Part shown: positions 12,649 through 59,400 of the stretch, piece after piece
Layout: the number at the start of each line of letters is the position of its first letter
Position numbering within the stretch: position 1 is the first letter of the stretch
Assembly: GCA_965649765.1 (NCBI GenBank)
Contig: OZ287751.1
Coordinates: 11,656,001-11,720,000, forward strand
Direction of reading: 5' to 3'
DNA: 64,000 nucleotides
Source of the DNA: Bispira polyomma
Lineage: Eukaryota
Program-made: the position numbers and the translations under genes
Notes under the pieces: model-generated
The model's input: the letters and a program-made list of their open reading frames with translations, nothing else
What the model was told of the DNA's origin: nothing
The model's database searches: none

Positions 12649-12657
12649 AAACCCAAG

Positions 12658-13627
12658 TCAGAGGGAAGTGGGGACAATGTTTGCAAAAGTGTGTGGAATC
12701 ACAGAGGCAGCTTGTGATGTAGATTGAAGATAAGTCCATACAGCTGAGCTGCGCCAAAGTCCGTGTGCCATAATATTTTGTAAAGAAATGTTGCTATTAA
12801 ATGCCAATGTTGCACCGGACCTACGAAATGTATGAAAACCATGTGTAGAGTGATCAATTCCAATATGTTGAAGTATCATTTTTAATGCTGCCCTAATGTG
12901 CGAGTCCACTACAGGGTAATGAGGGGGTTGTGCTGAGGTGAACAAGGGGGCGAAAGGCGCCAGCCCCCTGTTATTGATCAAACCATGAAGTGCTGTAACT
13001 GGACATAGTAATGGAACTTTAATTGAAGGTAACTGGACAACATGTGAGTTGGATCTGTCCTGCATGTTTTTGGCCCACTTTATTATGAGGTGTACCCCAG
13101 GAGGGCCAAATACTACATCATGAATCAGTAAATTTCTAGTGGGGTCGGATTTGCTTCTTGAATGTGGGGCGATGTTGGACATGCGCAAAAACCCATAATA
13201 TGCCACCAAAAATATAGCCCTGAATAACTGTGGGTCTGGAAGAATTTCACATGCCTTTTTAACAGTTGTTTAATGTCAAACACCCCTTATGAAGCTGGTC
13301 TAAAAGGAGAGTTATGAACCAAACTACGTGTAAACAGGGAAATGGCATTGTGTTTAAACACTGCTGTATTGATTTGATATTTTGCAGACATGAATTTCAA
13401 TGCCGCAAGATAGTTATTCACTACTTTTGGAGATAAATTATTCTGCGTAAGATATTCCAAAAATGCCAGTACTGAATGTACAGTGATGTCCTGAATGTGT
13501 GCATATTGCAAGAAAGCCAGAAATGTCCTAAATTGGCTAATATAGGCTGATGTATTCGCAGGTCTCAGTGCTGTGTTGATCCTGTTGATCGCAGCAGTGG
13601 TGAGTGAATCTGTTACAGTTGTGGCAC
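12658..13627 (-). pseudogene. E1 tyrosine recombinase (stop + frameshift near 13260-13290)
   Basis: FLRMSN, KWAK, HTFRRSGAT, HGLW, WTYL catalytic motifs; N-terminal part in ORF 13287-13511, frame open up to 13627. Confidence 0.92.
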
Positions 13628-13633
13628 CTACAA

Positions 13634-16452
13634 TTAGATATTATAATCCAGGTTAAAATGTGTTATAGGAACCTCCTTGCGTGTGCAATGGCTTAATTTC
13701 TCCAGCACTTCTTGTTTAGGGGGATTATCTGAATATATGCATGAAAGTGCGTCTGCCCATATATTCTCCTTACCTTTTATATGCTGTATGTTCAGAGTAA
13801 TGTCCAGTATGGAAGATATCAACCAAATGTTCCGAATGCATGCTGCTAAGAAGGGGTCCCTAGTTTTGCCGGTCTGGACAACCAAGACTACAGCCATGTT
13901 ATCACAGTGTAAAGTAACTTTCTGGTGAGCCCAGTCCTCACCCCAGATCCTTAATGCAATTACAATATTGATCATCTCTAATTGGGTTATGTGTAACTTC
14001 TGTTGGTAAATATTGTATACAGGTGTATAATAAATCTGTGAGCCCCATATGCCACCTAGTCCTGTTAAGCAAGCATCCAAATGGAGTTCAGTATATTCGC
14101 TAATAGTAGAAGGGACAATGAAAGTAATTCCATTGTATTTAAACAGGAAGGCGACAAACCAATCTAAATCTTTTTTTATATTATCTGTAAGTTTGAATCG
14201 CTTGGCACCGGGCGAAGCCCTGAATACAGAAAGTAACCTATTGATAAAGCACCTAGCTGGTTTTACACACTTGTGAATATACAGCAATTTGCCGAGTATG
14301 GACTGGAATTTTGAACGTGATAACCATGATTTTGTGCGTGCTTCCACACATGCGTCGTAAATTTCCTTTATTTTTTGGGGAGTTATGCTAATAGTGCCCT
14401 CGTTGATGTTAATGTCAACGCCTAAGAATGTGACACATGTAGAAGGGGGTGAAATTTCCGGGTTCATTGGGAGGCCAAGATCTCCTAACAATGTGCAGAG
14501 GATATCAAAACCTTGTTGCGCCTCCGATTTCTGACAGACGCAAATATAATCATCGATATAGCATGAAAGGTCATACCCTTGCTTAGCCATGTGATCTGCA
14601 ATAATGTCTGAACATCGCTGGAAGACGGCACTTCCGTGCGCCCACCCAAATGCGACTGCAGCGTCGACATAGTATTTATTGTCATGACATATATCGAGTT
14701 TAAGAGCATCGACGGGGTCCACTCTTAAATTTTGAAAAGCTCTGGCCACATCGACCTTAAACATAACTGGTTCAGAAAATTTCAAAATGTTAGAAGTAAC
14801 CGTATCTATGTTGGGAAACTTAAGAAGAAATTTGGTGTTGCCATAACTGTCCCTACTGACGTGATCATTTACTGAATCACCCAATGGGTGGGAAAGATTT
14901 AGAATGATTCTACGTTTATCCTGATCTTTAGGTCTGGTTAACAAGGGGGAACAATGGTAATGTGGATCTGGAAGTATGTCCACTGGACCTAACATGGCCC
15001 CTTTAGACTTCTCTTTCTCAAGATATTGAACAATCGCATTTGAGTATTCAAGAGCCGAGTGATGATTAGTCACGTGTTTAGCTTGCAACTGATCTGCATT
15101 ATATAATGACAACGGAAAACCGAATTTCAAGTATTGTGTAACTATCTTATCTGGGTGATCCTGCGTTATTTTTTCCCATGCAGCGATATTTAGTTGAGAC
15201 TTGATAGGTATTCGTGCCTGTCTGTAATTCGGAAGTCCTGTGTCTGTTATAATGTTTGCAACATGCATAATGTTCTCAATACTATCTAGCAGAACCGAAT
15301 CCCTGTCTGGTCCTACAAATTGAAATGGAGTACTAGTAAGCTTGATAAAACCTGTGTTTTTATCAGGGTTGTCGATGTCCTTATTGGGTAACGCTTTTGA
15401 AGAAGAATTAACCTCCATGTCAGGGCCCACCAACCCATCCAGGTTGTTAATGAGCGGAGCGGAAGTACAACTCACCTTGTGCATTTTTTCCCAATTATCT
15501 TATTTTGAACTTTATTACATTTAACATACATGGTATCTTTTTCAATGATCTTATCTATGATATTACACATGTACTGAGAATAATCATGACCAAAAGTGAT
15601 ATGACATGCCAGGTCCTTACTACAGTTGTCATGAGCGTCTGCTGCCCCCATCATTTCCTTGTCATTAAACTTATATGCCCTGTTCCAGCTGTGACTGGTC
15701 ATGATGATTTCCTGCCTTTCTACAACATCTAACCGAAAGCCTGGCATGGCATCCAAGCGTGTATAATTGAAAGTATTACCTGCCTGATCCCACTCCCTAG
15801 TGCAAAAACCTGACATGTCATGATAATTTGGAAACTGCAAGTATACCAAAGCTTTAACCATGCCATTGCTGGAATAATAATCATAGTAATCATAATTCAT
15901 TACAGAAACTATACATTCAGTCTCAAAAGTGCCTCCATACCACAGCACACACTGTTTGTCATATTGTTTATCATCTGGTCTCTGAACATGACAATAGCCA
16001 TGTCTATAATTAAACCCGTCTACATCAAACAGAAAGTTATTATTACCATTGCTATGGTAGCCTAATTGGGTAAATTCAAATTTTTGTGATATTTCCACAA
16101 TGTGATTTTCCTTTCTTGGGAAATCTCCTTTGCTACCCTGCAAATTTCCCTTACAGTGTTTAATCATGTCTGTTTTTTTGTTAAACCTGTCATTGCCCTG
16201 TTCAGAGACACTAGGAATAGTGGTTTCACCATTTCCAATTATTTTTACATTTGTATTTTTTACACTGCTATTTTTAACTATATGGGGCCCCTGTGGGGTC
16301 CTCTGTGATTCTTTTGAACCAACTAAACATATACTTTTTACCTTACGGTTGTCGTCATTTCCAACATTATTATAATTACTGACTATATCTCTAGTACTCT
16401 TAAATAAACTACACTCTCTGATAGTTCGTTTACTTGGTTGTCGACCGACTTC
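13634..16452 (-). pseudogene. E1 pol: N-terminal extension + RT + RNase H (one frameshift near 15480)
   Basis: KVDVARAF, AFGWAHGS, YIDD, LDACLTGLGG, LEMIN, CDNMAVV, ADALS; frame open from the gag TAG (16453) to 15472. Confidence 0.92.
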
Positions 16453-17599
16453 CTAACTGGGTGTCTGCTTGTCCGAGGATCTTTTGGCGACATTCGCCTT
16501 AACACATTTGAATTCTGGATGTGTGTTCTCCCTATTTGCTGAGCGAAAACAATGGTTACATATGTGGCGATATTGTCCGTGGTCGGACTCGTGGTTGCAA
16601 GTGCCGTTATTGTAAAATTTACAAACATTCTTGGGTTTTTGTGATGCCTGTGATGCCTGTGGGGCCGTTAATCAGAGCCAGCTGCGATGTATTCATGCGA
16701 TTTAGAGCCCACTGTGTAGAGTTCGACCAATCCAGTCTACCCTCTTCCACCTCCTGCATGTTCAATGCCCAACCTGCTCTAACACCTGGCCAGGGAAGAG
16801 AAGCCGAATCCCTCAGAGTATAAATCATTTGGTACATCATGTGCCGCATGGTAGTGGCATCTGAGACTTGTACAATGTTAAATAACTGCCCGGCAGCCAA
16901 CTGTGACAGTGAGAGATCATCAAAGCTAGGTCGTTTCCGAGCAGTGCCTCCAATCCAGCCCTCGTTTGACCACCGAGATTGTGGATCAGACGTAATAACG
17001 TCCGTGGTGTTAAACCGATCGGATTTGTGTCTGAGGGAGGTCTTACCTTGCGACAGGTCCGTCCTAAGCTGCACGTCATAAGCCGCCAGTCGTTGATTTA
17101 CTGCAGCGTTAACCTCAGGTAGGGTCTTCAAAACATCCGGTCGAGGGATAATGCCATCCCGCTGGTAGTCTTGGTGAAGAGCAGCCACTGGGGCCCTGTA
17201 CTGAATGGCCTGAGCCGTGTGGACGTCTGTATGCGTGTGAGGGACGTAGTGATTACCCGGCAGAATCAGGGGAAGTTTGTCTGCAATGGGTGGCCGTAGT
17301 TCTATCATGGTATTGTTGGCGCCCTGCTGTGTAGGAGAGGTTAATGGGGCCGAGTTACACGCACCTGTCAATCCCACCTTATCGAGCCGTCTATTAATTT
17401 CAGAATTTGCTGATTCCAGCCTTTTTAAAATAGTCATTACGTCTGAAATACCATTCTCACCCGTCGCTGTCTGTGCTTCTGTCTCCTTTGTGATCCTAAG
17501 TTTCCTAACTACTGGATCTGTGCCTTTGGTTGTCCCGCGTTTAGAGGTCGTTTTCTTCTTGGATAACGGAATACTACCTGGTGTTTTCGTCTTCCCCAT
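16453..17599 (-). pseudogene. E1 gag (frameshift near 16635)
   Basis: Homologous to E3 gag (RWSNEGW, LRDSASLPW, TQWALNR); C-terminal CKFYNNGTCNHESDHGQYRHICNHC..HPEFKC zinc-finger region in the shifted frame. Confidence 0.88.
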
Positions 17600-30200: not shown

Positions 30201-33200
30201 TACTTGCAGACTGTCTGTCCGATGTCCAGGCGGGAATGAACTACTCTAGACTAAAACTAAATCTGAACAAAACAGAATTCATTCTCATTAGAAGCAAGAA
30301 AAATAATGAATTCTTAAAATCTTTGTTTCCAATCTCCCTTCCGCAAAAAGACATACTACCTTCAGTAAATGCCAAAAACCTGGGTGTCACTTTCAATTTA
30401 GCTTTTTCATTTGACACTCATGTTGCTAACATCTGTTGCTCCTGCTAGTACCATATACGCAACATCAAAAGAATACGAAAACATCTGTCAATGGACACAG
30501 CGAGAACTGTGGCTAACGTCCTCATTTGCAGCCGCTTTGACTACTGTAACTTTCTTCTGCTCGGAGTAAACAAGTCACAGATCAAAAAGCTCCAGTCCAT
30601 CCAAAACTACCTGTGCAAGGTTATTTTTGCTTGGGTTGTCACACAGATGTCACTCCTTACCTCAAAAAAATTCACTAACTGCCCATTCACTGTCGTATTT
30701 TTTTCAAGATTCAAGTTACCGCTTTCAAGGCTGTAGTCACTCAACAGCCCTCTTACTTTGCTTCCCTTCTCTTCTTCAGTAACCGTAAGAGAGGCAACAG
30801 ACTCTCTATTTCTTCGGTCAGACCCATCACGAAGGAGGGATCCAAAGCATTCTCCATTGCAGCTCCTTTGTTGTGGAACAAGCTCCCAGTTTACCTTAGA
30901 TCAGTTGATACACTTAAAAAAAAAAGCTTAAAACCTATCTTTTTAACCGTGCCTACCCACCTTAGCTTACCTTGTACATGCTCCCACCTCTTTCCTTACG
31001 ACTTTGCTTTGCCCATGGACTTTACAATTCGAATAATGAATTTTGCTGTGGCTCTTTGGAAGATGCCTCGAATCAATAAAGCGCATTAAAAATTCATAAT
31101 AACAATAATAAAAATAATAGGAGTAATTATTTCTGTGTGTTATATGGATAAAAGTAACATATTAGGTTGACCCTTTCGCGAAGCATCTAAATTATTCAAA
31201 CACTTATAACCACATTAAAACGAATGTAATAAATACATATTGTGGTCAATTTTGTTGATATATCACTTGTTATATGGGGCCCACATGTTCCTATGTATAG
31301 TCATACATTGGCTTCCTATTAATTATCAAATTTTGATTTAAAATCAATGTCATAACTGTATATCTGTTGTCTCTCCACATCCCTCCTACTGTGCTACTCA
31401 TCTCTTAACTTTCGACTTTTCTGTGTCCTCTGCTAAGCTTTCTCAATCAGTGCCCTTGTGTTATGCAGTAGTCTCCAAGTTGAGCTTAGCTAGCTACCTC
31501 CCCTAACTATCTCCCTGTAGCCTCTCCTAACTCCTTCCTTACAATCTGCATATTGTATCTCAATTGGTTCATTTATTCTGTTGTTGCACTTTAGATGATG
31601 CCTCTCATCAAGAAGGCATGTTTAAAATGCAAAAATACAATGCACTCGCCTACCACCTGGGTTGGCATTATTGTGTTTTTGTTAAAAAGTTGCTACTTTG
31701 CACCAACCACCCTTTTTGGATTTCTTCTCCCATTCACTACGAGACAAATCGTCATGACAGTGATGTTAAACCAAACCATAATCTTGTTGATTGATATGCA
31801 ACACTTCCTGTTTGAGGAGGGATATTTGGCAATTACTATATAATCACCTTTGTACATAATTTTATGAGCATGTATCACTTTTATGGAGTGATATTTTATT
31901 AGCAATAGATGACTGATCAATATATTTGTAATTCTTTCCATCACAAAACAATGACTGAAAAATGCAAGGATTAATGCATAACCAGCAAGGTTGTCACACA
32001 AGCTCATAAAATACTTAATGCAGAAAGACCTTGGTGACACAAAAGGAAAATAGGGCAGTGAAGAAATACACAAAACTCCACTTACGTTTTGATGAGGCTG
32101 AACAACAAAAACTGCTTTTACCTCATTAAGTGTAAGGTTGAATGTGTCACTGAATGCTTGAAAAAGTCAGAGCTAATATTTCCCTTTAACAAGTTTTTCT
32201 TACTTAATTGGTTTGAATGCTTATATGGAAATGCTTATAATTATGTAGACTCGGAAGAAAGAACTTTTTCCCTAAACACCACTGTGTAAAGTCCATAAGT
32301 TTAATAATGCTGTACAAGCTAATTGAAAAACCACATTTTAGTGACATTCCAGTAATTTTGAAAAGTTGACTGTAGTAACAGCATATTATTTTACATTTGA
32401 GAGCTGTTTTCAAATATGATCCTAACATAATATCCTTGCAATGCAATTATTTGCCTTAATAAAAAGTCATGGATGGAAATACTTTATTGCTGACCTTAAT
32501 AAATAATGTTTTGTTAACATAAGACAGATATTGCTCCCTGGAGTGACATTGTGCTTATTTTCATTTGGTTAAAATGTGAAATAAATGTCTAATATGCAAA
32601 ATAAGTCACTAATACACATTTGATTTACTATGGAAGTTTCATCTAAAATGAACACATTGGACAGAAAGATCAGTGGAATCTTTAAAAAATCACACTTTTT
32701 ACAGTATAGTTTCAATAAAAATAGAAAGCGGTTTTAACTTCCTGCCAAATTAGTCGAAATTCTGCAACTTAAACTGATGGTTTGAGTCAAATACTATAGC
32801 TATAAATTTCCTTATTAAGGGTATAGCCTAGACAACTTAGCAGTAATTTTAATGGAGCTTTTAGTGAGGCAATCAAATTTGTTCTCGGATTTTAGACATA
32901 TTTAGTGTACACTAAGATGAGACAGAAGATATTTTGAGATATTTTGTGAGTGTAAGTTTTAGGGCATTTAATCAATACAGACCCTGATGTCAACTCAACC
33001 CTGGGGACCAACAAACAATAGCCCTTTGGTGAAGTGGAGAGACACAACCTTCTTAAAAGGACAAGGGGAGTAGTTTAGGAAAGCAACAATTTGGTATCAT
33101 TCATATTACAGATATGGAAGTTGTGATTTCGTTCTCTAACAAAATATATAATTCCAGTTATGTAGATTTCTACAGGACAACAGACACTTGCACAAATAAG

Positions 33201-35694: not shown

Positions 35695-36692
35695 ATGGCT
35701 CCTCGTAAAACATATGACTGCCAGAAATGTGGACAAAATCATGTTAAACCAATAGATGATAGATGTAAATTAGCAAACACTTTATTGTCGGAGAACTCTG
35801 TTCAAGCGAATGCAAGTCAAACTCCTGTTGGTGATACTAACTCTCAAATCCTACGTGAATTGCGAGCACTGGGGGGTCGTATGACCCTAATTGAGCAACA
35901 GGTTAGGCATTCAGAACATAGAGCGCAGTCCTTGTCCAGTTCACCACTGATGACCACACCCATGCGCACAAGCCAGGAACAGAGACCTACCTCGACACTA
36001 GTGGATCCGGAAGATGTCCTCGTTCCTTCTTTGCAAACCCTGCGAGACTCCCAGCAGTTGCAGTCAGCAGTCGACACCCGCCTCAAAGAACTGGCTGTTA
36101 TTAACGAGGCAGGTATGTTTAAGTCACAGAGGGGGGGGGGGGGGGGACAGATACTGTATGGGTTAAAAATAAAGTACCATGGCCCCAAACTTTGATTCTA
36201 GGGGGGCAAAATAAGGGCAGGTTGTCCTATGACTCTCTTTCCATGGCTCAATGGTTGGCTGGCTTCACCAGCATTATTAGAGATGAAAGTGATGTAACTA
36301 TTAAAAACCAAATTCTTGAATACCTCTCTGATTTGATGGAAGATGCTCATGACTTCTCTTGGAATTCAGCTAAGGGCAGTCATGCAGTGTTACTTTGCAA
36401 AATGGAAGAGGGAAAAATTACATGGGGGGATTCCCACAAACTAGACAGAATAAGAAGAGCTCATGCTCAAAAAGTAGTAAATTCAGGTCAAAATTTAACT
36501 CAAAACAATTCCAAGAGAAGTCATGACAAAGGGGCTCCATGCAAATACTATCAGAAAGGTACTTGCTCCCAAAAAGGGGACCACGAAACCAGGGGCCAAT
36601 CCTACCTCCATGTCTGTAGTGTATGTTTTGCATTGGGTCGCTCCCATGCCCATCCTTCTAAAGACTGTCGAAAAAATACAAAAAACGAATGA
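35695..36692 (+). pseudogene. E2 gag (frameshift in G16 run 36131-36146)
   Basis: N-terminal CQKCGQNH..C knuckle; MEDAHDFSW; C-terminal CKYYQKGTC..H..CSVC..H..C. Confidence 0.85.
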
Positions 36693-39222
36693 GGCACTGC
36701 AGCTGTGCAGTGCCCAAAATGTTTCTCAGTAATCAAACCTGTAAAAAGGACAGACAATTTGTGTGTCGTAATAATTTTAATGACAGAGTTGTACATAGTA
36801 GTGTATGTGATGTGTATGGTAGTAGTCACTGGAGAACTGATTGGGCTCATTTCAAACAAATGTCATACGCAGATGTATTAAAAAGGGGCAAGGCAAAAAC
36901 CAGTTTCAGGAGTAATTTGAGTAGAAAAACTGACAGTTTCTCCAGTGATTCCTCCAGATGAATAAAAAAGTCACAACATGTATACTAGTATCTTTAATAT
37001 GTGCCATAGTACTAAAATGTGTACACAAGTACCTGATAGTAGTAAATGTGTTGTAAGAATTGTAGGAAATAATGTCAGATGCAGCACTAGCAGGGTCAAT
37101 GGAAAAGTGCCAAAGGAAAAGTCACACCTTCCCAAATCCCCTGTTAAATCAATTGTCCAAGAAAAAGGTGCCAAACTTGGGGAAACAAGTAGGTCAAAAA
37201 CCTCTGTCCACTATTCACACCTCTTGAAAGGTATGAATTCTCCAACCCCCATTCAAAACAAATTTGCAATTTTGGCCACAATAGGTGATGGGGACAATAC
37301 AAATACTGAGGTCAAACAAATCAACACCTCTGTCCCTAAAGGTGGTTGCACACCAAAGGTAAACAGCCATGGGGTTAAGCTGAACACACATACAGCAGGT
37401 AAAGGTGCGCTTACACAAGGCAGTATAGACAGTGACAAATATGATTTGGAACTGCAAATCAAACCACGCCATAAGGACTTAATAAGCAAGGCTTATAACG
37501 AAACGCGCTTCCAACTGTGGAATTCACAGATGAATGACAAATATGGTTTTATTCCCTTAGGTGAATTACAAATTCCAATTTCTGATAACCGGCATAGCTC
37601 CCAGAAGTCGTTTCAAAAAACAAAAACGACCAAATTTTATGGGTGCACAAATAGAGATAAAGTCAGAACTAAATTCAGACGCTTGGGAAAAATACCTGCA
37701 AGGCTACTGGGATACCCAGTTGCCATTTTTAGTGAGATACGGCTTTCCACTTGACTTTGACAGCAGCAGTAAACTGTTGCATACCGAAGTTAATCATAAG
37801 TCGGCTACAGATTGTCCGGACGATATTAAGGCATACCTTGATGAAGAAATAAAATATGGTGCAGTGCTGGGACCATTTAAAGAAGTTCCCATATGTGACC
37901 TTCATATCTCACCATTCATGTCAAGGGAAAAACCTGGGGCACCTCATAGACAAGTACTAATAGACCTCAGTTATCCACATGGGGAATCTGTCAATACTGC
38001 TGTAGCTAAAGACAAATACTTAGGAACACCATTCTGTCTAACCCTTCCAACCATAGACACTATCACTAGCAAAGTAATCAAACTAGGTCGTGGGACGCAG
38101 TTATATAAAATCGATGTCAGCCGGGCATTTAGGCACGTAAAGATCGACCCAGCCGACTATAATTTGCTAGGCTTAAAGCTGGAAAAATACTATGTAGATT
38201 CGTGTCTCCCCTTTGGTTTTCGGCACGGAAGTGCAAATTTTCAAAGATTAAGTGATGGCATCAGATATATAATGCAATGCAATGGCTATGACGTCACAAA
38301 TTATGTTGATGACGTCATAGGATATGGAAATGACGTCGAAAGTCAACGCTCATTTGACTTGTTGCATAAATTATTACTAGAATTAGGTTTTGCGATTAGT
38401 AACAAAAGACTAGTGTACCCCAGTACAAAAGTCACACGCTTAGGCGTCCTTGTTAATACCCAAGACTTCACAGTCTCCATACCACCAGAAAAGTTGGAAG
38501 AAATAGGTAGCATGATAAGTCTATGGAAACATAAGCAAAAATGTACAAAACGAGAACTCCAATCATTGCTGGGCAAACTACTGTACATATCAAAATGTGT
38601 ACGAGTATCCCGGGTTTTCCTTAATCGCATGTTGGACACTCTGAGACTGGCAGCCAATAGCAAAAATATAAAATTAACAACAGAATTCCATCAGGATGTA
38701 AACTGGTTTTCAAAATTTTTGCCTACATTTAATGGCAAAGCCTTTTTTTATCTTAAACCAACAACTGACTGTATACAACTCGACGCTTGCTTGCAAGGTT
38801 TTGGAGGCCGATGCAATGAACAGGTATACACCCATGACATACCTCTGTGGTATCTTAACCTCACAATTGTACACTGTGAGATGCTGAATATTTTGGTAGC
38901 CATCAGGGTATGGAAATCTCTCTGGGCAGGTAAAAGACTAATCATTCAATGTGACAATGCAGCAGTAGTCTCTATTCTCAGTTCAGGAAAAACTAAAGAT
39001 TTAACATTAGCAGCCATAGCTAGAAACATTTTCATGGAAACAGCATTGGCTGACATAAGTCTCAGAACTATTCATATATTAGGTAGAGATAACAATGTAG
39101 CAGACTTGCTGTCTCGATGGCAGCTCACAACAAATACCAATGATAAGCTCAAACAGTTTATATCCAACCCTATATGGATTCCAGTTCAAAGTAGCATGTT
39201 AGAAATTGACTGGTCTATATAA
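36689..39222 (+). pseudogene. E2 pol (N-extension, RT, RNase H; two frameshifts)
   Basis: KIDVSRAFRH, LPFGFRHGS, YVDD, LDACLQGFGG, CDNAAVV, ADLLSR in 37561-39222. Confidence 0.9.
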
Positions 39223-39228
39223 TTCCAG

Positions 39229-40217
39229 ATGTACCAGCTCACCTACAACAGATAGCCTCACAAGCATCCCACAGAGCTGACAGGGCTTTCATACCATCTA
39301 CTGAAAGATCTTATCAAAACATGTTTCGATTATTCTTAGCTTATTGTTGTTTCACTCATATTGACTGTCATTCAATTTCTCCCATGTTGCTACTCTGCTT
39401 CCTAGAGTGTTTGGTAGTCAATGATGTGTCTTCGTCCTCCATTGCAAATTACCTGTCAGTAGTCAAGGCAAAAATGGCCTTGCATGGCCTAAATGTAGCA
39501 GCGTTTGCTGACCCAAGAATCAAATATTATCAAAAATCATTAATCCTAAGTACACCATTTCGAGCTAGAATTAGGCGAATTATTGATATACCTTTACTTT
39601 GTCAAATTATTCAAATATGTGACACAATGTACATGGGCCAAGTTTTCAAAGCGGTATACCTTGTGGCTTTCTTTTGATTTTTACAAATTTCTAATTTAGT
39701 ACCATATGCAGTCACACAATTTTCACCCTTGCAACAACTGGCCCGAGGTGATATAATTTTTGCCTCTCCAGGGCTCCACATTATTGTAAAATGGACTAAA
39801 ACCCTTCAGTCCAAAAACAGGGCTAAAGTTGTGAAAATTCCGGCTCTAGGTGCTTCTCCTCTCTGCCCAGTTGCAGCAATCAGGGCCTTGCCAGCCATTA
39901 CCCCTGGCCATAAGAATGGCCCCCTATTTCAGTTTAAAAAAGATTTTACCTGGATACCACTTACTGACACTAGAGTCAGATCAAATCTTGCCCAAATACT
40001 AAAGCGCCTAGGTTTACATTCCTCAAATATTACATTCCACTCTTTCCGGTGTTCAGGTGCCATCTTAGCTTTTAACAGCAATGTCCCCATACAGGACATC
40101 CAAAGTCATGGCACCTGGACGTCGGATTGCGTCTGGAACTATAATGTCCAAGATCACAATACATCAGAACAAGTGGCAATGGCTTTCAAGGCTCTATTAT
40201 GTAGACCTACCTCCTAG
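39229..40217 (+). pseudogene. E2 tyrosine recombinase (in-frame stop 39675-39677)
   Basis: KWTK, HSFRCSGA, HGTW, WNY; first catalytic Arg appears mutated to Gln (FLQISN). Confidence 0.9.
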
Positions 40218-44430: not shown

Positions 44431-44849
44431 GTGAGCCCACTCAAAAGACTGAGGTGACCTTGGTGTATAACTTAAACATTTCAAACTTGAACTTAACCTT
44501 TGGTTTTTGCATAGCACGACCCAATAGGGGTCTGCTACTTCAGTTCAACCAAAGGAAAATGTATTACTACTTTAAGCCCTAGGGGCAAATTCGACAACTG
44601 TAGCATGATTCATCCAACCGTGAACTGGCCAGCCAATTAGGGGTCTTCCCTCCCAAATTCTGCATTCCTGTCCTAATATCTTCCATTTTGGAAAAGGATT
44701 CAGCAGTACACACACGTACATTTTATACAGCCAAGTTTATGAAGGCTCTGCTGAATGCAATTGTTTTTAGTATTTTAGTTTTTTATTTTATTGTTTGTTT
44801 TTAATATACTCTACTTTTTATGTGTTTGTGATATATATATTGTGGTAAA

Positions 44850-46103
44850 ATGGGGAGGACGTCTGAAAGGAAATTAAGACACACTAAGAAGACCCCAGCT
44901 ACTGAAGGCAGTAAGGCAACAAAGAAAGGTACAGCAAAGAAAAGCAAATTGGGTAAGAATACTCGTATTGATGACAGTATCATAACTAACCCCAGTAGCC
45001 TCTTTGATCAAGCTGAGGCCGACCACGTGTCTCCATCTACCCGATCTCGGCTTACGAACCCCACCGGATCATCATACCGGGACAATGAAATGCTAACCAT
45101 ACTAAGGCGGCTTGAGGAATCTAACGCGCTACTCACCCATAGGTTGGATCGAGTAGAAGCTAGAGACTCGACTGCTCAGTCAGCATCTCCTTGCCTAAAT
45201 CCCACACGTTCTGCTCACCAGGTCGCGTTGGGTAATGACATCACGGCTCAGCCACACCTCTCAGCTCCAGGTTCCATGACGAATCCTAGTCACTCGTATC
45301 CACAGGCACCGCTGTCGATCAGTACCACGGCTCAGCCACACACGTCAACAGCCAGTTCACTTAACCGGGTCGACTACACCACTGATGCAATCGTTCCCAA
45401 AGCAGACATCCTGAAGACGTTGCCAGACATACAGGCAAGGGTCAACGAGAGGCTAGCCGAGTACAACCTCCAGGCCCAGGCCGTATTTACCCAAGGTAAG
45501 GCTGCTCTCAGACAGAAGTCGGGGAGATTTAATACTACAGACATACCGAACAGCAACCCGAAGACTAGGTGGGCAAACGAGGGGTGGACGGGTACTTCTT
45601 CGCGTAAACGACCACCTTATGATGACTTGTCGCTTCCTCAGTGGGCATCTGGCCAGTTGGCAAATGCTCTCCAGGTCACGGACCCTCTGGTCTCGAGAGA
45701 AATTATACAGCAGGTCGTTCTATCCCTCAGGGACGCCGCGTCACTACCATGGGAGGTCGTCCGAACGGCCTGGGCGTTAAACATGACCGAGATTGAAGAA
45801 GGTAGACTGTCCTGGGGGGACACAACGCAGTGGGCCCTCAACAGGTTCAGTGCGTCACAGCTAGCTATGGTGAATTCTAAAACCACCAATGCTTCATCTA
45901 CTCACGTCGGATCAACAGCCAAGGTTATTTGCAAACTGTATAACTCCGGAAAGTGTTCGCATAAAGCAGATCACAGCCAGTATAAGCATGTGTGTTGGCA
46001 CTGTGCTACCGTGCTTCACAAAGATGTATACCACCCAGAATTTAAGTGTTATAAGTCCAACTCAGCTAAACAGGCAGAATCAGGCTCTTCTTCTACCCAC
46101 TAG
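44850..46103 (+). CDS. E3 Gag (417 aa) with C-terminal Cys/His zinc-finger region
   Basis: Intact ORF; CKLYNSGKCSHKADH..CWHC..HPEFKC. Confidence 0.9.
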   Translation: MGRTSERKLRHTKKTPATEGSKATKKGTAKKSKLGKNTRIDDSIITNPSSLFDQAEADHVSPSTRSRLTNPTGSSYRDNEMLTILRRLEESNALLTHRLDRVEARDSTAQSASPCLNPTRSAHQVALGNDITAQPHLSAPGSMTNPSHSYPQAPLSISTTAQPHTSTASSLNRVDYTTDAIVPKADILKTLPDIQARVNERLAEYNLQAQAVFTQGKAALRQKSGRFNTTDIPNSNPKTRWANEGWTGTSSRKRPPYDDLSLPQWASGQLANALQVTDPLVSREIIQQVVLSLRDAASLPWEVVRTAWALNMTEIEEGRLSWGDTTQWALNRFSASQLAMVNSKTTNASSTHVGSTAKVICKLYNSGKCSHKADHSQYKHVCWHCATVLHKDVYHPEFKCYKSNSAKQAESGSSSTH

Positions 46104-49100
46104 GACATTGACCAACTACCAGGACTAGGGCCATCTTGTCATAACAGTGAAAGTAAGAATAAGTTAGAAGTATATGTAAAACAGAATTATGAAGACCAAG
46201 ACATAACTAAAGCAGATAAGCATATGCTTTCATTGTTAAATAAGATGGAAAGTAATAATTCGTATATTTCTTCAAACAAACCTAAAAATGTTAATGTGAA
46301 TGTATTGTCACATGAAAGTGAAAATGTAAAAAATGTACACACTGTTAAACCGGAAATGTGTAAACCTAGCTTGTCAATTAGTACTGACAAAAAGAGCATT
46401 GATGATAGCCATATTGCAGTTAAAAATTATAATGTCATTAGATTGCCTAACAAGTTTGGAAAGATAAAAAATTCATGCACTGCTAAAACGGCAATGTGTG
46501 ATCCTAGCTTAACAGTTAGTATCGACAAGAAGGTTAATAATAGTGAACCTATTGGGGTCAAGAAATGGAATGTTCAGCAATATATCAGGGCCAGTGTACT
46601 GGACTCGAGTACCAGTACTAGAATGTACAGAGATGACAGTTATGGTCAATTCACCAAATTTGGGGGCTTTTCTAAAAATAAAGGTGATATTAAGATAAAT
46701 GGTCTAGATAATTCACACAGCGAAGTCCCTGTATTTTGGGGAAACAGAAATATTGGTGAACATTTAGAAAGAGAGAATAAAAGAAATTTTACAGTTAATG
46801 CTGATTTATGTAATGCCAGCAGTGTTAATGCCAAGTATGGTACCCCAAATGAGACAAAAGTAAAAGTTACCATCTCTACTACTAATTGGTTGTTTTGCAT
46901 GCCTCACATTACACAAGGAATGCCTGTGGTTTTTGTGCAGTCTGAGCTGCCACATGTTTCTGGTTTTTACACCTCATGGGATGAGGATTTTGGGACAAAT
47001 TTCTACAGATGTAAGAACCCACCAACTGGGGTAATGTCAGTGACCAGCATAGTCACAACTCAAATAGCTTTGGCTAATTTTAGGGATGATTTTCAAAACA
47101 GCAACAAGGTTGTAACAGTTACTGATGATGACAAATGTAAAGCTAAGGATGCTTGGCATGATTTTCAAAAAGAAATGTATTGCAAAAACAATTTCAAAAA
47201 AGGTTATACAGAATATGTAACAAATATCATTGACGAAATGTTGTTAGACATAAATGTAAATACAACATGTGTTGTCAGTAATGACAGACCAATGGAGGTT
47301 CAAACCTGCCATAAAGGTAAAGTAGCGTCGTGCGATCTCTTCTTCCAAACTTTTGGACATTTCTCACAAACTACCACAAGTGCCACCATAGTGGATAAGG
47401 ATATTAATTTCCCCAACAAAACTAAGGGTTTCTTGGCAATCTCAGAAACCAAGTTTAGTTTTATAGGACCTGACAGGGCCCCCATACACATTACTTCAAT
47501 TAAGGAAATGTCTGAAATAGCACAAACCATTAGGGATACGGGATGTCCCAATTATAAGGGAGCAAGGATCCCCCTGGTATCAGGTCTTAACACCAAAGCA
47601 TGGGAGGAAGTCCTTTCAAATTACCCAGATGAACTTTTACTACAATATATCAAGTTTGGTTTTCCCCTCTCACTTACTTGTCCAAAGGATTTAAAGGTCA
47701 AGGATACCACCAATCACCACTCTGCACTTCAATTTAAGGACCACATAAGGCAATATTTAGAAAAAGAGAAACAGTGTGGGGCCATGTTAGGACCTAGTTT
47801 AGACATTAAGGATGAATTATTTCACTGTTCTCCACTGCTCACCAGACCTAAGGACAATTCCAAAAGGCGTGTAATTTTAAACTTGTCTCACCCCAGTGGG
47901 GAATCACTTAATGACAATGTCAATAGGAAACAATTCGATGGAGTGGACTTCACCTTAAAATTTCCCACAATAGACGATATAGTAGAACAGATTCGTAAAA
48001 CACACACTCCACGTATCTTTAAACTGGACGTCGCGCGCGCTTTTAGAAATTTGAGGGTGGACCCAGTCGATGCCATGAAATTAGGAATCAAATTTGACGA
48101 CCATAAGTACGTTGATCCGGCGGTTGCGTTCGGCTGGGTCCACGGCTCGACTGCTTTTCAGCGTTGCTCGGACGTTATAGCACACACCATGGAGAAGCAC
48201 AACCATAAGATCTTCTGTTATATCGACGATTATGCTTTTAACCAATTATATGAACTGGTTACCAAACTTGGTTTTCCGTTAAACCCAGAAAAAATTTCAA
48301 AACCAAGTTCAAAAGTCACCTGTCTTGGCATAGATATCGACATTCAGGCAGGCACTATAAGTATTACTCCCGAAAAAATACAGGAAACATATAACCTCTG
48401 TTTAGAAATAGTTAACAAAGTTTGGATATCTAGAACTAAATTTCAATCAATATTGGGAAAATTGCTTTACATCCATAAATGTGTAAAGCCTGCTCGAATG
48501 TTTATAAACAGACTTCTTATGGCGTTTCGGAATAACAGTCAAGCTAAACGATTTAAAATTTCGCATGACATGAAGGCTGACTTATTATGGTTCGTACAAT
48601 TTCTACCACGCTATAATGGTATTACGTTCATTGATCCGGTAATTGCTAAGCATAAGGACGAGGTTTTTATTGATGCATGCCTCACTGGCCTAGGGGCCAT
48701 CTACACCAATGAGGTTTTCGCTACCCCATTATACAACATCTATAATAGGGCTTTATCTATCGTGCATATCGAAATGCTTAACATTCTATTAGCTTTAAGG
48801 GTCTGGGGTGAGCAGTGGAGTCATAGACGTATAATCATGAATTGTGACAACATGTCCGTTGTCCTGGTAGTTAGGTCCAATAAGACAAAAGACGATTTTC
48901 TTGCTTTATGTTTAAGGAATATCTGGCTAATCTCGGCTGTACATGATATTACAATCGAGATTCAGCACATTAAAGGTAAAGACAATGTAATTGCTGACCT
49001 CCTTTCAAGACTTTTTTCTGAGCAACCCCCCCATAAGGGACAGTTGGAAATATTAAGGGATTCCTGTAAGTGGCACACCATTCCACTCCAGTACTTTAAC

Positions 49101-49118
49101 CTAGACTTAAATATATGA
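46104..49118 (+). CDS. E3 Pol (N-extension, RT, RNase H), in frame with gag
   Basis: Open from the gag TAG; KLDVARAFRN, AFGWVHGS, YIDD, IDACLTGLG, IEMLN, CDNMSVV, ADLLSR; no methyltransferase domain seen. Confidence 0.92.
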   Translation, partial: DIDQLPGLGPSCHNSESKNKLEVYVKQNYEDQDITKADKHMLSLLNKMESNNSYISSNKPKNVNVNVLSHESENVKNVHTVKPEMCKPSLSISTDKKSIDDSHIAVKNYNVIRLPNKFGKIKNSCTAKTAMCDPSLTVSIDKKVNNSEPIGVKKWNVQQYIRASVLDSSTSTRMYRDDSYGQFTKFGGFSKNKGDIKINGLDNSHSEVPVFWGNRNIGEHLERENKRNFTVNADLCNASSVNAKYGTPNETKVKVTISTTNWLFCMPHITQGMPVVFVQSELPHVSGFYTSWDEDFGTNFYRCKNPPTGVMSVTSIVTTQIALANFRDDFQNSNKVVTVTDDDKCKAKDAWHDFQKEMYCKNNFKKGYTEYVTNIIDEMLLDINVNTTCVVSNDRPMEVQTCHKGKVASCDLFFQTFGHFSQTTTSATIVDKDINFPNKTKGFLAISETKFSFIGPDRAPIHITSIKEMSEIAQTIRDTGCPNYKGARIPLVSGLNTKAWEEVLSNYPDELLLQYIKFGFPLSLTCPKDLKVKDTTNHHSALQFKDHIRQYLEKEKQCGAMLGPSLDIKDELFHCSPLLTRPKDNSKRRVILNLSHPSGESLNDNVNRKQFDGVDFTLKFPTIDDIVEQIRKTHTPRIFKLDVARAFRNLRVDPVDAMKLGIKFDDHKYVDPAVAFGWVHGSTAFQRCSDVIAHTMEKHNHKIFCYIDDYAFNQLYELVTKLGFPLNPEKISKPSSKVTCLGIDIDIQAGTISITPEKIQETYNLCLEIVNKVWISRTKFQSILGKLLYIHKCVKPARMFINRLLMAFRNNSQAKRFKISHDMKADLLWFVQFLPRYNGITFIDPVIAKHKDEVFIDACLTGLGAIYTNEVFATPLYNIYNRALSIVHIEMLNILLALRVWGEQWSHRRIIMNCDNMSVVLVVRSNKTKDDFLALCLRNIWLISAVHDITIEIQHIKGKDNVIADLLSRLFSEQPPHKGQLEILRDSCKWHTIPLQYFNLDLNI

Positions 49119-50104
49119 TTTCAGGATCAAACCACATCACACAAAGATTCACAGACTCAGCATGGCAGAGGATTGACTGTGCTTTGCGTCCAAAGACTAC
49201 ACAGACTTACAATACCCAGTTTAGAACCTTCATCTCATTTACTTGCTATGCTGGAATAGAAGAAATTACCACACACTCATTGATTGCATTTCTAGAATAC
49301 TTGGTACAAACAGGGGCGTCACCCAACATGGTTAATAACCATCTTGCAGCCATTAAACATATGGCCAAGAAGTTGTACTGGGATACAAAAATTTTTGAAA
49401 ACAATACAGTGTCTATGTTTACTAGAAGCTTGACACATACATCACCATTTAGACCTTCACCTAAAGGAATTTTCCACATTGAACACTTATTACTGATCTC
49501 CAAAGCTTGTGATATTTTAAGAGACCCACCTCTATATAGGGCCATTTTCATGCTAGCTTTCTTTGGATTCTTGAGAATATCCAATATAGTCCCTCATTCC
49601 AGATCCAAATTTGATCCAACTCGTCACTTTCTAAGGAAAGATATAATCTTTGGCCACCCAGGTGCACACTTGATCTTGAAGTGGGCAAAGAATTTACAAA
49701 TTAGATCACAGTTTCACATTATACAGATACCCTTACTGGACAATGTTTTACTATGTCCAGTCAAGGCCATACAGACATTATTGAAATCTAGACCTCTGTC
49801 ACCTGATGCCCCACTTTTCGTCAGTAGTACTTACCCACACTATCCAATTGTAGAAACACATGTGCGTTCTGCACTAGCTTCAATACTTACACATGTGGGA
49901 ATTCCCACCAAATCACATAGTTTCCACACATTTAGAAGATCAGGGGCAACATATGCCTTTAATAATAACGTGTCACTTCAAAACATCATGGCGCACGGCC
50001 TCTGGAGGTCATCTGCAGTCTGGTCATATTTGCATCAGAATTCTCAAGCAACTTCTGCTGTCCCTCTCACTTTCGCCTCCTCTATACCTAAACTTCCTTC
50101 CTAG
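49115..50104 (+). CDS. E3 tyrosine recombinase (329 aa; predicted spliced exon 49125-50104)
   Basis: FLRISN, KWAK, HTFRRSGAT, HGLW, WSYL all intact. Confidence 0.95.
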   Translation: MISGSNHITQRFTDSAWQRIDCALRPKTTQTYNTQFRTFISFTCYAGIEEITTHSLIAFLEYLVQTGASPNMVNNHLAAIKHMAKKLYWDTKIFENNTVSMFTRSLTHTSPFRPSPKGIFHIEHLLLISKACDILRDPPLYRAIFMLAFFGFLRISNIVPHSRSKFDPTRHFLRKDIIFGHPGAHLILKWAKNLQIRSQFHIIQIPLLDNVLLCPVKAIQTLLKSRPLSPDAPLFVSSTYPHYPIVETHVRSALASILTHVGIPTKSHSFHTFRRSGATYAFNNNVSLQNIMAHGLWRSSAVWSYLHQNSQATSAVPLTFASSIPKLPS

Positions 50105-50705
50105 TTTGGCTTGGGTGATTTTAAAATTACCTTGTATTTTAATAATTTATACCTATTTTACACCTACCTGTATATAGATTTACTAACATGTACAGAATTT
50201 AAATAAATTCCTCAAACCATAGTTTCACTGTCTTCTGCTATACTTACCAGACTATCTTTCCACTACAACTTACCTTCTTTCCATTATACCAAGTAGAACT
50301 GTGCATAGCACGACCCAATAGGGGTCTGCTACTTCAGTTCAACCAAAGGAAAATGTATTACTACTTTAAGCCCTAGGGGCAAATTCGACAACTGTAGCAT
50401 GATTCATCCAACCGTGAACTGGCCAGCCAATTAGGGGTCTTCCCTCCCAAATTCTGCATTCCTGTCCTAATATCTTCCATTTTGGAAAAGGATTCAGCAG
50501 TACACACACGTACATTTTCCACCCACCTCCCCTTAACCACACCATAAGTTAATGTTCATTGTTCATTTCTTAGCTATGGCCACTTTTGGTACTAAGCACA
50601 TACTATGTTAAGAAGATCTCTGGTTGCGGACCCAAAAGGGCCCTGCTGAAAATCTTTGTAAGATAGGAAATCACTTAAATTTGGTTGGATTTGTGGGAGT
50701 TTTTT

Positions 50706-50835: not shown

Positions 50836-52584
50836 CCAAAAACTCCAATTAAGGCTGCTAGCGCAGGCATAATACGGCTTATAAGTCCGGATTAAATAGG
50901 AAATTTACTAGTTAACGATTAAATATTGGTATGATTTAAAATGTTGAATGTAATGTCATTGGGCATAATTGTATTGAATAGTATTGGTATGATGTAATGT
51001 CATTTGGCATAATTGTATTGAATAGTGTTGGATCGACGTTGGCCTTAGGGGCTGATTGTTATAAAGGTGTACTGTTGTATGCTAGGCAAATGCTTAGTCC
51101 TCAGACGTTGGTTTTCCCAGCTTGCTGCTTAATGCTTGTGAGGTTTTATCCTCTGTATTATTTACTACCTTGCTTTTGCTTGTGTTGTCATGTAATGGGT
51201 GATTTTAAAATTACCTTGTATTTTAATAATTTATACCTATTTTACACCTACCTGTATATAGATTTACTAACATGTACAGAATTTAAATAAATTCCTCAAA
51301 CCATAGTTTCACTGTCTTCTGCTATACTTACCAGACTATCTTTCCACTACAACTTACCTTCTTTCCATTATACCAAGTAGAACTGTGCATAGCACGACCC
51401 AATAGGGGTCTGCTACTTCAGTTCAACCAAAGGAAAATGTATTACTACTTTAAGCCCTAGGGGCAAATTCGACAACTGTAGCATGATTCATCCAACCGTG
51501 AACTGGCCAGCCAATTAGGGGTCTTCCCTCCCAAATTCTGCATTCCTGTCCTAATATCTTCCATTTTGGAAAAGGATTCAGCAGTACACACACGTACATT
51601 TTCCACCCACCTCCCCTTAACCACACCATAAGTTAATGTTCATTGTTCATTTCTTAGCTATGGCCACTTTTGGTACTAAGCACATACTATGTTAAGAAGA
51701 TCTCTGGTTGCGGACCCAAAAGGGCCCTGCTGAAAATCTTTGTAAGATAGGAAATCACTTAAATTTGGTTGGATTTGTGGGAGTTTTTTGAACTCGGAAC
51801 TGTGTGGTGTTAGGTCCTTCCTCATAACCTACCCTCTGGTGTGGGCTACCAGGGGGGAAATGCTCTGTGAGGTAGGATGTCTCACTGCTAGGCGAGTCGG
51901 TGCTGTAAGTTCCGGGTTCCCAAAAACTCCAATTAAGGCTGCTAGCGCAGGCATAATACGGCTTATAAGTCCGGATTAAATAGGAAATTTACTAGTTAAC
52001 GATTAAATATTGGTATGATTTAAAATGTTGAATGTAATGTCATTGGGCATAATTGTATTGAATAGTATTGGTATGATGTAATGTCATTTGGCATAATTGT
52101 ATTGAATAGTGTTGGATCGACGTTGGCCTTAGGGGCTGATTGTTATAAAGGTGTACTGTTGTATGCTAGGCAAATGCTTAGTCCTCAGACGTTGGTTTTC
52201 CCAGCTTGCTGCTTAATGCTTGTGAGGTTTTATCCTCTGTATTATTTACTACCTTGCTTTTGCTTGTGTTGTCATGTAATGGGTGATTTTAAAATTACCT
52301 TGTATTTTAATAATTTATACCTATTTTACACCTACCTGTATATAGATTTACTAACATGTACAGAATTTAAATAAATTCCTCAAACCATAGTTTCACTGTC
52401 TTCTGCTATACTTACCAGACTATCTTTCCACTACAACTTACCTTCTTTCCATTATACCAAGTAGAACTGTAACTTGAACATCTCAAACTTGAACTTGGCC
52501 TTTGGTGTATAACTTGAAGATTTTGGGTTCAATCTTAACCTTTTGGAGATTTGTTGTTTGGCTATGCCACAGGTCTCACAGACT

Positions 52585-57329: not shown

Positions 57330-59400
57330 TTTCTTTTAAAATATCTTAAACATCAAATCAATTAATAAAATATGTCTGTGTAAGTCCACATCAAAAATTT
57401 TCTTGAGCTTGGTTTGCAAAGGTCTGTGCATGGCCAATGCTATATTAAAGTAAGAAATTCTCTGGTCTAAGAATGCTTGAACATCTATATGGCATATAAT
57501 ACATTTAGCTTTTATAGCCGAGATCTGGTTAACTACTTGTGTAGCTGATACACCATTGAAATTTAGAAACTCTAGATATGTCAATAATTGCAAAACAGTC
57601 ACCTTGTGGGGAGGCCACGACATGAAGGTTCCAAAAGCTAGGAACTGTCTGAACATTCTGTCATAGGCTTTATTAGTGGCTGGAGTAAAGGCTGAGTTTT
57701 AGCCTGTCACAAGCACTTTTCATCAAGGCCAGACCCATAGGGTGAGTGTCTGAAAAAAAAGACTGAGACTTGCTATATAAAAGTATTCACATAAAGTAAG
57801 TTATCAGCAGCAGGAAGCCATTGAACTGGCCCAGCTAGTTAATTTAATAGTGCATGTTATATGGTACAGTAATATGTACAAACACTGATTTTCTGGTACA
57901 ACCAGTACTTTTAAAGCATCACTATAACTAACGTTTGGCCTTCTGACCTGCATATATTTACACATTTTCTGATACACATTTTTCTCAAACAAATGAAAAT
58001 CTTTGAGTCCTGTCCCATAGACAGTTTTATTTACAACCTTAATATTTTCAACTTTTCTGTCAACTGCATTCAAGCAGTGGCCCCTTAGTTTTTTGCCCCT
58101 TTCTTGCCCTCACAAGTCTCACAATTGTGCTTGTACACTTGACCCCTTGTGTTATGGGAATTGGAGCAAATTCAGTCTTGGGAGAACCTGCAAGGCATTA
58201 AACCCTTTTTGTGACTAGTTTTGTTATTGCTGGTACTCCCCTTGCCCCATTGAAATTTGTAGATGTACTAACGTGGCGTTGGGCATGTGCTCGACGGATT
58301 CTATCGACTTTCTCGATGTTCAACTACCACAGCTTGTCTATCTCCATATTTGTTAGGACTACTGCGTGGCATACCTTTGCTGCCTCCCACGAAAAGTCTT
58401 GGGCATTCTCCATGAGGCCACTCATATAGTTTGACACTCGTATAGTTTGACATCGCATTCTTGATTTTAGTCGATTTCTCTTCATGTGCAATCCGAGTAA
58501 AACCACAAACCCACTGAACTAGGGTTAAGTCATCATAGCTTGGGCGCGTTTTTGAGCTACCCGTCAACACGTAATTCTGTGGCCATCCGACCATTTTTTT
58601 CACAATTACATCGTTTTCCCCAGTTCTTTGAGACTTAAGTTTACCTGAGGATTTGAATTTGAATTTGGATATTTAACGTCCACTCTAGTACCTTTTTAGT
58701 AGGTTATATTGGGACGGGTAGTTGGAAATGCTGGAGGAAACACTGCATACAGTCGGTCAAGGTTCTGCACAGAAACCAGCGGCCCACAGTAAGGAACTAC
58801 CACCTTTCCCACATAGGCATCGACGGGATTCAAACTCACGCCGCCCAGAGGTGAGAGACCAGTGATTGTGAAGCGCAATGCTTGCTAACCACTAGGCCAC
58901 CGCGGCCCCAGTTTACCTGAGGGAGTTTCATTAAGGGTTCTGAGGTCTTTAATTCTTTATTCTACTTGCAATTGAATCAGAGCATTCTGACTTAAAAAAT
59001 CGACACTAGAAACGACAGTATCGTGGCCTGCACCAGACAGGCTGTTACCTTCATCAGCAGAAATTACATTTGGAGAAATACTAGAAGGAACTGTACTACT
59101 TGCCTTACTACTGGTGAGGTTGGCCGCCAACGCCGCCTCCACTTCCTCACCCGAAACATCAGGCACAACAACCGAACAATTTCTTCCAACCGGTCTCTCA
59201 TGTTTTTGCAAACTTTTCGGGCAGAAAACAATTTTTATACCAGGCATGACTTGAGTGTGTATATTAAAATATTAAAATGACTAAAACAGTAAAACAAGTA
59301 TAAAACATAGAACACAACTCTCTTTGTCAACCACCAAACTGTTTTAAAACTTTCAAAGTGACACTATGTCAGTTAAGTGAACATGTTGCCAATAATTACC
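57330..59400 (-). mobile_element. E4: RT-less, E2-family YR retroelement remnant (gag, short pol stub, 5' part of YR)
   Basis: gag 59247-58085 (CPKS..H..C, GKLKSQR, WPQNY, MENAQDFSW); stub 58073-57804 (SYSDALK, cf. E2 SYADVLK); YR N-terminus 57749-57336 (AYDRMFRQFLAF). Confidence 0.8.
58651..58909 (-). mobile_element. tRNA-derived SINE inserted in E4 gag
   Basis: A/B boxes; TSD agtttacctgagg (58638-58650, 58910-58922). Confidence 0.93.

Follow-up and report, generated by a model that had tools for sequence, protein, structure and literature searches.

We examined four tyrosine recombinase (YR) retrotransposons, E1 to E4, in a 64,000-nucleotide (nt) window of the Bispira polyomma genome (NCBI GenBank assembly GCA_965649765.1, contig OZ287751.1, positions 11,656,001 to 11,720,000 of the forward strand; coordinates below are those of the window). 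Comparison with related elements makes it probable that a functional GT-AG intron joins Gag codons 1-215 of E3, the sole intact copy among the four, in frame to the recombinase, and that the recombinase is made as a Gag(N)-YR fusion from a spliced messenger RNA (mRNA). An original prediction, drawn from the letters of the window, had proposed such a fusion, and the comparative evidence supports it through the conservation of the sites, their phase, an AG-free zone in front of the acceptor and the absence of a conserved YR start. The proposed E3 intron spans the Gag core, the zinc knuckle and the entire pol gene, and the fusion length predicted for E3, 541 amino acids (aa), was reproduced from its two exons ((646+977)/3 = 541 codons). 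The relevant parts of E3, with a slash at each splice junction, are as follows.

44850..46103, plus strand: gag open reading frame (ORF), 417 aa, ending in TAG at 46101-46103
44850..45495, plus strand: coding part of exon 1, Gag codons 1-215 and the first base (G) of Gly216
45496..49124, plus strand: proposed intron, 3629 nt, CAAG/GTAAGG to atttcAG/GA
46104..49118, plus strand: pol, frame open from 46104, ending in TGA at 49116-49118
49115-50104, plus strand: YR ORF, 329 aa, with a phage-integrase catalytic domain and a SAM-like N-domain
49125..50104, plus strand: coding part of exon 2, the tyrosine recombinase, in phase 1

E1, E2 and E4 are damaged homologues, and their candidate sites lie at these positions.

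13628..17046, minus strand: E1 proposed intron, 3419 nt, CAAG/GTAAGA (GT at 17046-17045) to aattgtAG/GT (G at 13628)
36113..39228, plus strand: E2 proposed intron, 3116 nt, GCAG/GTATGT to aattccAG/AT
57750..58916, minus strand: E4 donor TCAG/GTAAAC (GT at 58916-58915) to acceptor ttttttttcAG/AC (G at 57750)

All eight donor and acceptor strings were found where the prediction had placed them, and its distances from the gag ATG to the donor were correct (646 nt in E3, 553 in E1, 418 in E2 and 331 in E4), every one of them 3n+1. The acceptor G had been said to lie 6 nt past the pol stop in three copies, which we confirmed for E3 (TGA at 49116-49118, G at 49124), E1 (TAA ending at 13634, G at 13628) and E2 (TAA ending at 39222, G at 39228). 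The acceptors of E1 to E4 are all in phase 1 with the YR frame, as claimed; the YR frame of E4 also carries stops.

Related elements were gathered from databases, where all YR relatives are ORF calls on genomic contigs. A search with the YR exon returned 157 relatives and a library-wide scan 4,868. We compared the DNA around eleven relatives and added three usable loci by a pattern scan of JGI metagenome contigs. The sample comprises 18 lineages from four sources (the window, ENA ERZ22147071, ENA ERZ25073846 and JGI Ga0308008). Fourteen of them have gag (E1-E4, L001, L003, L004, L006-L009, L011, L012 and L014), and four without it (L005, L010, L013 and L016) contribute acceptor data only. Pairwise YR identity ranged from 21 to 63%, with a median of 34%. 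No database YR protein exceeds 62% identity to a window copy, so the window copies do not belong to the same families. Within the window, YR identity to E3 is ~50-62% for E1 and 35% for E2, and E4 was detectable only via a relative from another locus.

At the donor, the homologous gag Gly codon reads GGT in all 14 lineages with gag, giving a G/GT site. This Gly lies 25-29 residues after the start of a conserved L(R/K)xxP helix, with gapless spacing in most lineages; that spacing, together with a downstream KSGR(F/Y)N motif, identifies it as homologous and bears out the claim that the same mid-gag Gly is split in E1 to E4. Ahead of the Gly codon stands CAA (ten lineages), GCA, TCA (two) or CAG, with an in-frame TAA in L011; 13 of the 14 lineages have A as the last base there. 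The residue after the Gly varies (K, M, V, T or N), while its codon always starts with a purine and the site reads AG/GTR. Background codon use in the same elements is 0.31 GGT among Gly codons and 0.49 CAA among Gln codons. Other invariant Gag residues use mixed synonymous codons (one Gly is GGC, GGG, GGT, GGA, GGC, GGT, GGT and GGG across eight lineages), so synonymous sites are saturated between lineages. The 5' splice consensus MAG/GTRAGT is matched at eight of nine positions in E3, E1, L001, L003, L004, L007, L008, L009 and L012. Among seven intact elements, the donor is the only site with at least 8/9 matches in the ~5 kb of coding sequence of E3, L003 and L004, and one of two to three such sites in L001, L007 and L012; in L014 the ~5 kb of coding sequence holds none.

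At the acceptor, all 18 lineages have TT-N-Y-AG and then G or A, in phase 1 throughout, with CAG or TAG at the junction. The AG straddles a YR codon boundary, and the split codon is G/GN, G/AY or G/AA. The codon before the split is TCA, GTA, CCA, TTA or GCA; these encode five different residues (S, V, P, L and A) and share a final A. The one before that is ATT, TTT or GTT, with T as its last base throughout. The site lies ~21 codons 5' of a conserved RP.T motif, without gaps in 12 of the 14 lineages counted. The AG-free stretch in front of it has a median length of 28.5 nt; the background value in these elements, taken from one AG to the next, is 9 nt (Mann-Whitney p = 4e-7, uncorrected for relatedness). 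The pyrimidine fraction is 0.50-0.83 over positions -20 to -3, and the tract is short and interrupted, which would fit partial splicing in an element that also needs its unspliced genome. Position and phase of both sites, which the prediction expected to be kept in related elements, are thus conserved throughout the sample (GGT in 14/14, a phase 1 acceptor in 18/18).

As a control for nucleotide-level constraint, we aligned intact sequences by codon and asked in how many of the gapless columns the third base never varies (~1,080 columns in all).

gag, 7 sequences: invariant third bases in 3 of 292 gapless columns
pol, 10 sequences: invariant third bases in 0 of 473 gapless columns
YR, 12 sequences: invariant third bases in 0 of 319 gapless columns

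The three invariant gag columns are the donor Gly and, counted from it, codons -1 and +2, and among these columns the suppressed synonymous variation anticipated at the donor codons was found there alone. When anchored by position, the two acceptor codons likewise have an invariant third base in 18/18 lineages. Since invariant third bases sit only there, nucleotide-level selection is concentrated on the two proposed splice sites. With the 14 further lineages added, the donor and acceptor pattern is far beyond chance. A functional intron is supported because both sites are conserved as nucleotides where amino acids and other synonymous sites vary, and because the donor is rare in coding sequence, the acceptor has its AG-free zone and YR lacks a conserved start. 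From the sites, their phase and this conservation, which are read directly from the DNA, we infer that splicing occurs and that the fusion is made.

The YR frame is closed by a stop 9-63 nt 5' of the acceptor in all 14 lineages tabulated, and the loci added later are alike. An in-frame ATG falls between this stop and the acceptor in only four of the 14 (E3, L001, L003 and L007). Where E3 has its ATG, we found GTG in L008, L009, L010 and L016, ATA in L003 and E2, and CTA in E1, and no ATG precedes the conserved N-terminal motif in L004, L005, L006, L011, L012 or L014. The prediction had noted that the N-terminal region of the E1 YR lacks an ATG and that the first in E2 lies some 30 codons in; the first in-frame ATG is indeed at +237 nt in E1 and at +93 nt (31 codons) in E2. 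The leading 'M' of many database YR proteins is a GTG or TTG picked by a prokaryotic gene caller. These observations bear on the possibility that YR is translated from unspliced RNA at a start of its own, by ATGA termination-reinitiation, leaky scanning or an internal ribosome entry site (IRES), with the GT and AG incidental. The ATG of the E3 YR ORF (49115-49117) does overlap the pol TGA as ATGA, the same overlap occurs in L001, and L003 and L007 have an in-frame ATG upstream. An AUG overlapping or adjoining the upstream stop is nevertheless not conserved, the ATGA type being confined to E3 and L001, and because the E3 ATG position varies or is absent elsewhere, stop-start reinitiation would lack its defining conserved AUG. 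The spacing from the pol stop to YR also varies from 0 to ~330 nt, and an own start leaves the invariant synonymous positions at the gag Gly codon unexplained. We consider this explanation highly unlikely.

The same region could in principle yield a Pol-YR (Gag-Pol-YR) protein by a -1 ribosomal frameshift near the end of pol. YR is in the -1 frame relative to pol in every element checked (E3, L003, L004, L005, L006 and L007), a constancy we attribute to point mutations that relocate the pol stop while the frame itself is fixed. A frameshift is excluded in at least three lineages (L005, L007 and L012): stops in the YR frame lie there 3' of the pol stop, the two frames hence do not overlap, and the 16-nt pol/YR overlap of E3 contains no X XXY YYZ heptamer. 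Conservation of the donor would again go unexplained, and this route is so improbable that it scarcely competes.

Alternatively, YR could be read from a subgenomic mRNA started at an internal promoter near the end of pol, with TT-N-Y-AG-G as an initiator or promoter element and translation from an internal or non-AUG start. Internal promoters occur in other retroelements, and the TCAG of some lineages resembles an initiator core. Half of the lineages, however, have GTAG, TTAG or GCAG rather than a CA initiator, and an internal AUG would remove the conserved RP.T N-terminal region in many of them. Neither the conserved, phase-matched gag donor nor the AG-free zone is accounted for, which makes an internal promoter very improbable as the source of YR. 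Finally, the intron may be real and yet serve something other than a fusion, such as down-regulation of genomic RNA, a different start or a regulatory RNA. Splicing is known to limit full-length RNA in other retroelements, and once homology is counted the phase match amounts to a single 1-in-3 ancestral coincidence. This explanation does not account for an acceptor that coincides with the 5' edge of the YR frame in 18/18 lineages, with a stop just upstream and mostly no AUG, nor for an exon 1 that is open from its AUG to the donor in every intact copy and a donor at what modelling predicts to be a domain boundary. We judge it unlikely, and retain the spliced Gag(N)-YR fusion as the preferred reading.

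Several points weigh against that fusion. Splicing and the fusion are predicted here from genomic sequence, and the lineage statistics assume independence, which is justified only indirectly by the synonymous saturation seen elsewhere. A branch point could not be assigned with confidence across lineages; over the 10-45 nt scanned, YTNAY occurs at about -25 in E3, E1, L001, L009 and L010 and only at -12 in L011, with none in four lineages. The L006 donor is weaker (GG/GTACGA), and the upstream in-frame ATG of E3, L001, L003 and L007 allows independent initiation in those four. No Gag(N)-YR fusion was found among database proteins (YR matches of at most 420 aa, gag matches of 241-425 aa), whose sources are genomic ORF calls and uninformative on splicing; the YR protein search covered lengths up to 576 aa, longer fusions falling outside it. 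Within the same length range, the YR search revealed no intron-less (processed) genomic copies.

To place the donor within Gag, we modelled E3 Gag with AlphaFold2 on a 25-sequence alignment (mean predicted local distance difference test (pLDDT) score 66, with folded parts at high confidence). The model consists of a disordered basic N-terminus, a helix at residues 75-108, a disordered spacer and a second helix at 185-214, followed by a disordered linker (215-231), a helical core (240-349, pLDDT >90) and a zinc knuckle. Both N-terminal helices are conserved across families. The donor residue Gly216 is in this model the first residue past the second helix, at a predicted domain boundary. A fold search of the model against PDB gave nothing at E<=0.001. 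In L004, L006, L012, L014 and the E4 type, a CxxC...H...C motif at the extreme Gag N-terminus replaces the basic KKSPATEGKRKTR-like segment. This motif has the zinc-ribbon-like form CxxC-(x)n-H-x3-P-x-G-x2-C and was located at ~3480-3560 in L004, at the gag N-terminus in L006, at 99-200 in L012, at 153-250 in L014 and at window positions ~59247-59170 in E4. The KKSPATEGKRKTR-like segment is conserved in the E3 sub-group, and in a fusion either N-terminal type would end up on the recombinase.

The layout of gag and pol was compared as well. In six intact elements the two genes share one frame with exactly one stop between them (TAG in four, TGA in two), and the pol frame is open immediately after it.

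E3: single gag/pol stop at 46101-46103
L001: single gag/pol stop at 5392-5394
L003: single gag/pol stop at 4227-4229
L004: single gag/pol stop at 4971-4973
L012: single gag/pol stop at 1122-1124
L014: single gag/pol stop at 1317-1319

The single in-frame stop suggests that Gag-Pol may be made by readthrough. Gammaretroviral (murine leukemia virus-type) Gag-Pol is made by stop-codon readthrough, and these six elements resemble it in having gag and pol in the same frame with exactly one stop. They are unlike the L007-type lineages, where gag and pol are in different frames, as they also are in the E2 type.

Taken together, the most economical reading is likely a retrovirus-like programme in which unspliced RNA yields Gag and readthrough Gag-Pol and spliced RNA yields Gag(N)-YR. 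The full-length transcript would serve both as genome and as mRNA for Gag, with Gag-Pol arising by readthrough of the single in-frame gag/pol stop. The host spliceosome would splice a fraction of transcripts, using the donor that splits the mid-gag Gly codon after its first base and the phase 1 acceptor at the 5' edge of the YR frame, and would thereby take out the entire pol gene along with the Gag core and zinc knuckle. Translation of the spliced mRNA from the gag AUG would give a Gag(N)-YR protein, 541 aa long for E3 and within ~460-630 aa for the remaining lineages. Such a fusion would supply the third ORF with a cap-proximal AUG, and would give the recombinase the basic N-terminus (or the CxxC...C motif) and the two conserved N-terminal Gag helices. 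Speculatively, this shared module might mediate co-assembly with Gag or nuclear targeting, an idea compatible with a donor at the predicted domain boundary after two conserved helices.

In avian retroviruses, the env mRNA takes its start codon from gag, and Env is preceded by the first Gag codons, joined to it in frame. By analogy this would be the nearest mechanistic counterpart: in avian leukosis/Rous sarcoma virus, as proposed here, a 3' ORF without a usable start borrows the gag AUG and codons via a spliced mRNA, and unspliced RNA is kept as genome and as mRNA for Gag and Gag-Pol. The major splice donor of these viruses lies at nt 397, just inside gag and 3' of its AUG (PMC7291142). The two systems differ in that ~140-320 Gag codons with two helices would be kept here, compared to about six there, and in that the downstream gene here encodes an integration enzyme rather than an envelope protein, within a YR retrotransposon that has no long terminal repeats (LTRs). 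Foamy virus Pol and the env-like ORFs of gypsy/ZAM-type insect elements (errantivirus env) are also expressed from spliced mRNA. They are alike in devoting a spliced mRNA to an enzymatic or 3' ORF instead of including it in a Gag-Pol polyprotein, but they are not known to be fused to a large Gag N-terminal module or to involve a tyrosine recombinase.

We advance one wider proposal tentatively, as a possibility that falls a little short of an even call. According to it, the whole Ngaro-like clade, represented in at least four data sets, would obligatorily make its recombinase as a spliced Gag(N)-YR protein, as part of a three-product retrovirus-like programme in an integrase-less element without LTRs, and the N-terminal Gag module would bring the recombinase to Gag assembly or to the nucleus with the complementary DNA (cDNA). 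In surveys, YR ORFs are scored by looking for frames that open with an ATG, and if the fusion is real, annotation pipelines define the YR protein wrongly and err in sorting intact copies from damaged ones. The balance of spliced and unspliced RNA would then be a control point for transposition, as in retroviruses, and the fusion would offer a concrete, testable route for the recombinase to meet the cDNA. It would also mean that a retrovirus-like logic, combining readthrough with a spliced subgenomic mRNA that borrows the gag AUG, arose in a lineage without LTRs, protease or DDE integrase. The prediction knew of no account of such an intron in DIRS or Ngaro elements, and in the literature searched on DIRS, Ngaro, PAT and VIPER, where YR ORFs are presented as separate, overlapping or frameshifted, we likewise found no description of splicing, introns or subgenomic RNA; an earlier mention in the Poulter and Butler review or the original Ngaro paper is possible.

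By their sequence features, E1 to E4 are Ngaro-like YR retrotransposons. The catalytic residues R154, K192, H271, R274 and Y305 are invariant in a 22-sequence YR alignment. The pol ATG-ORF of E3, starting at 46224, encodes 964 aa with Pfam matches to reverse transcriptase (RT) at 581-671 (RVT_1) and RNase H at 845-929 (RVT_3), and pol of related loci also has RT matches. The YR ORF lies 3' of pol on the same strand. E3 pol had no Pfam match to a methyltransferase, protease or DDE integrase, and only 35 residues follow the RNase H domain. Absence of a methyltransferase separates Ngaro from DIRS1/PAT elements. Split direct repeats were sought and found in E3, and a DIRS1-like assignment, which calls for inverted terminal repeats with an internal complementary region, is contradicted by its repeats, which are direct and not inverted, and by the lack of the methyltransferase domain. 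The repeats of E3 are arranged as follows.

44508..44724, plus strand: left terminal repeat (A1), part of a split direct repeat whose other copies, at 50302-50518 and 51386-51602, match it at 100% identity
50112..52579, plus strand: 3' repeat region, a 1084-nt unit at 50112, 51196 and (partial) 52280, with terminal-repeat copies inside

Ngaro elements, the subject of work by the Goodwin and Poulter group, have the order gag, RT/RNase H, YR, no methyltransferase, and split direct repeats with internal copies 3' of YR (PMC4157794, PMC3783388, PMC3266345). The elements described here are alike in gene order, in lacking a methyltransferase and, for E3, in the split direct repeats, and their Ngaro-likeness rests on this architecture. 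They would differ in expression, the Ngaro descriptions giving a separate or frameshifted YR ORF and neither splicing nor a Gag-YR fusion. E3 is probably a young copy, given the 100% identity of its split direct repeats. Its 3' unit is present two and a fraction times in copies that are also 100% identical, which suggests either a very recent insertion or the formation of a tandem multimer.

The damaged copies can be described further. E1, on the minus strand, has its gag ATG at 17599 and YR at ~13627-12670, and E2 has its gag ATG at 35695 and YR at ~39229-40199; both carry frameshifts. In E2, a run of ~15 G (GGG GGG GGG GGG GGA, 36133-36147) lies in gag just 3' of the donor and probably marks where the frame of this copy is broken. 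E4 is degraded and has no pol between gag and YR; its gag ATG is at 59247, and its exon 1 contains an in-frame stop at 58957-58959. A short interspersed nuclear element (SINE) lies next to its donor.

58651..58910, minus strand: transfer RNA (tRNA)-derived SINE, 260 nt, directly after the E4 donor, with A- and B-box-like motifs

The E4 donor had seemed displaced relative to the Gag core because this SINE inserted directly behind it. The SINE is flanked by a 12-nt target duplication, CCTCAGGTAAAC (58922-58911 and 58650-58639), which repeats the donor. Neither ARAGORN nor Rfam called it, and Rfam and tRNA scans (including ARAGORN) gave no matches across the window.

No Pfam family was found for E3 gag or for the N-terminal 559 aa of pol. 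The ~400-550 residues of E3 pol before RT (window 46224-47900) are without a Pfam match, and the pol N-termini of relatives are shorter (pol of 580-920 aa). A 31-nt inverted repeat (84% complementary) at 46114-46144 and 48842-48872 has one arm close behind the gag stop and the other ~250 nt 5' of the acceptor; we rejected it as a meaningful feature, its seed being at chance level for 11 kb. The 64-kb window has no N, is dense in transposable elements, and no host gene was found in it. Other repeats comprise a YR fragment and several RT fragments (window 6332-6457, 6872-8308 and 29957-30448; also L009 13679-14990). The L005 locus holds, at 8507-13514, a full ORF pair resembling that of a long interspersed nuclear element (LINE), with endonuclease, RT and RNase H.

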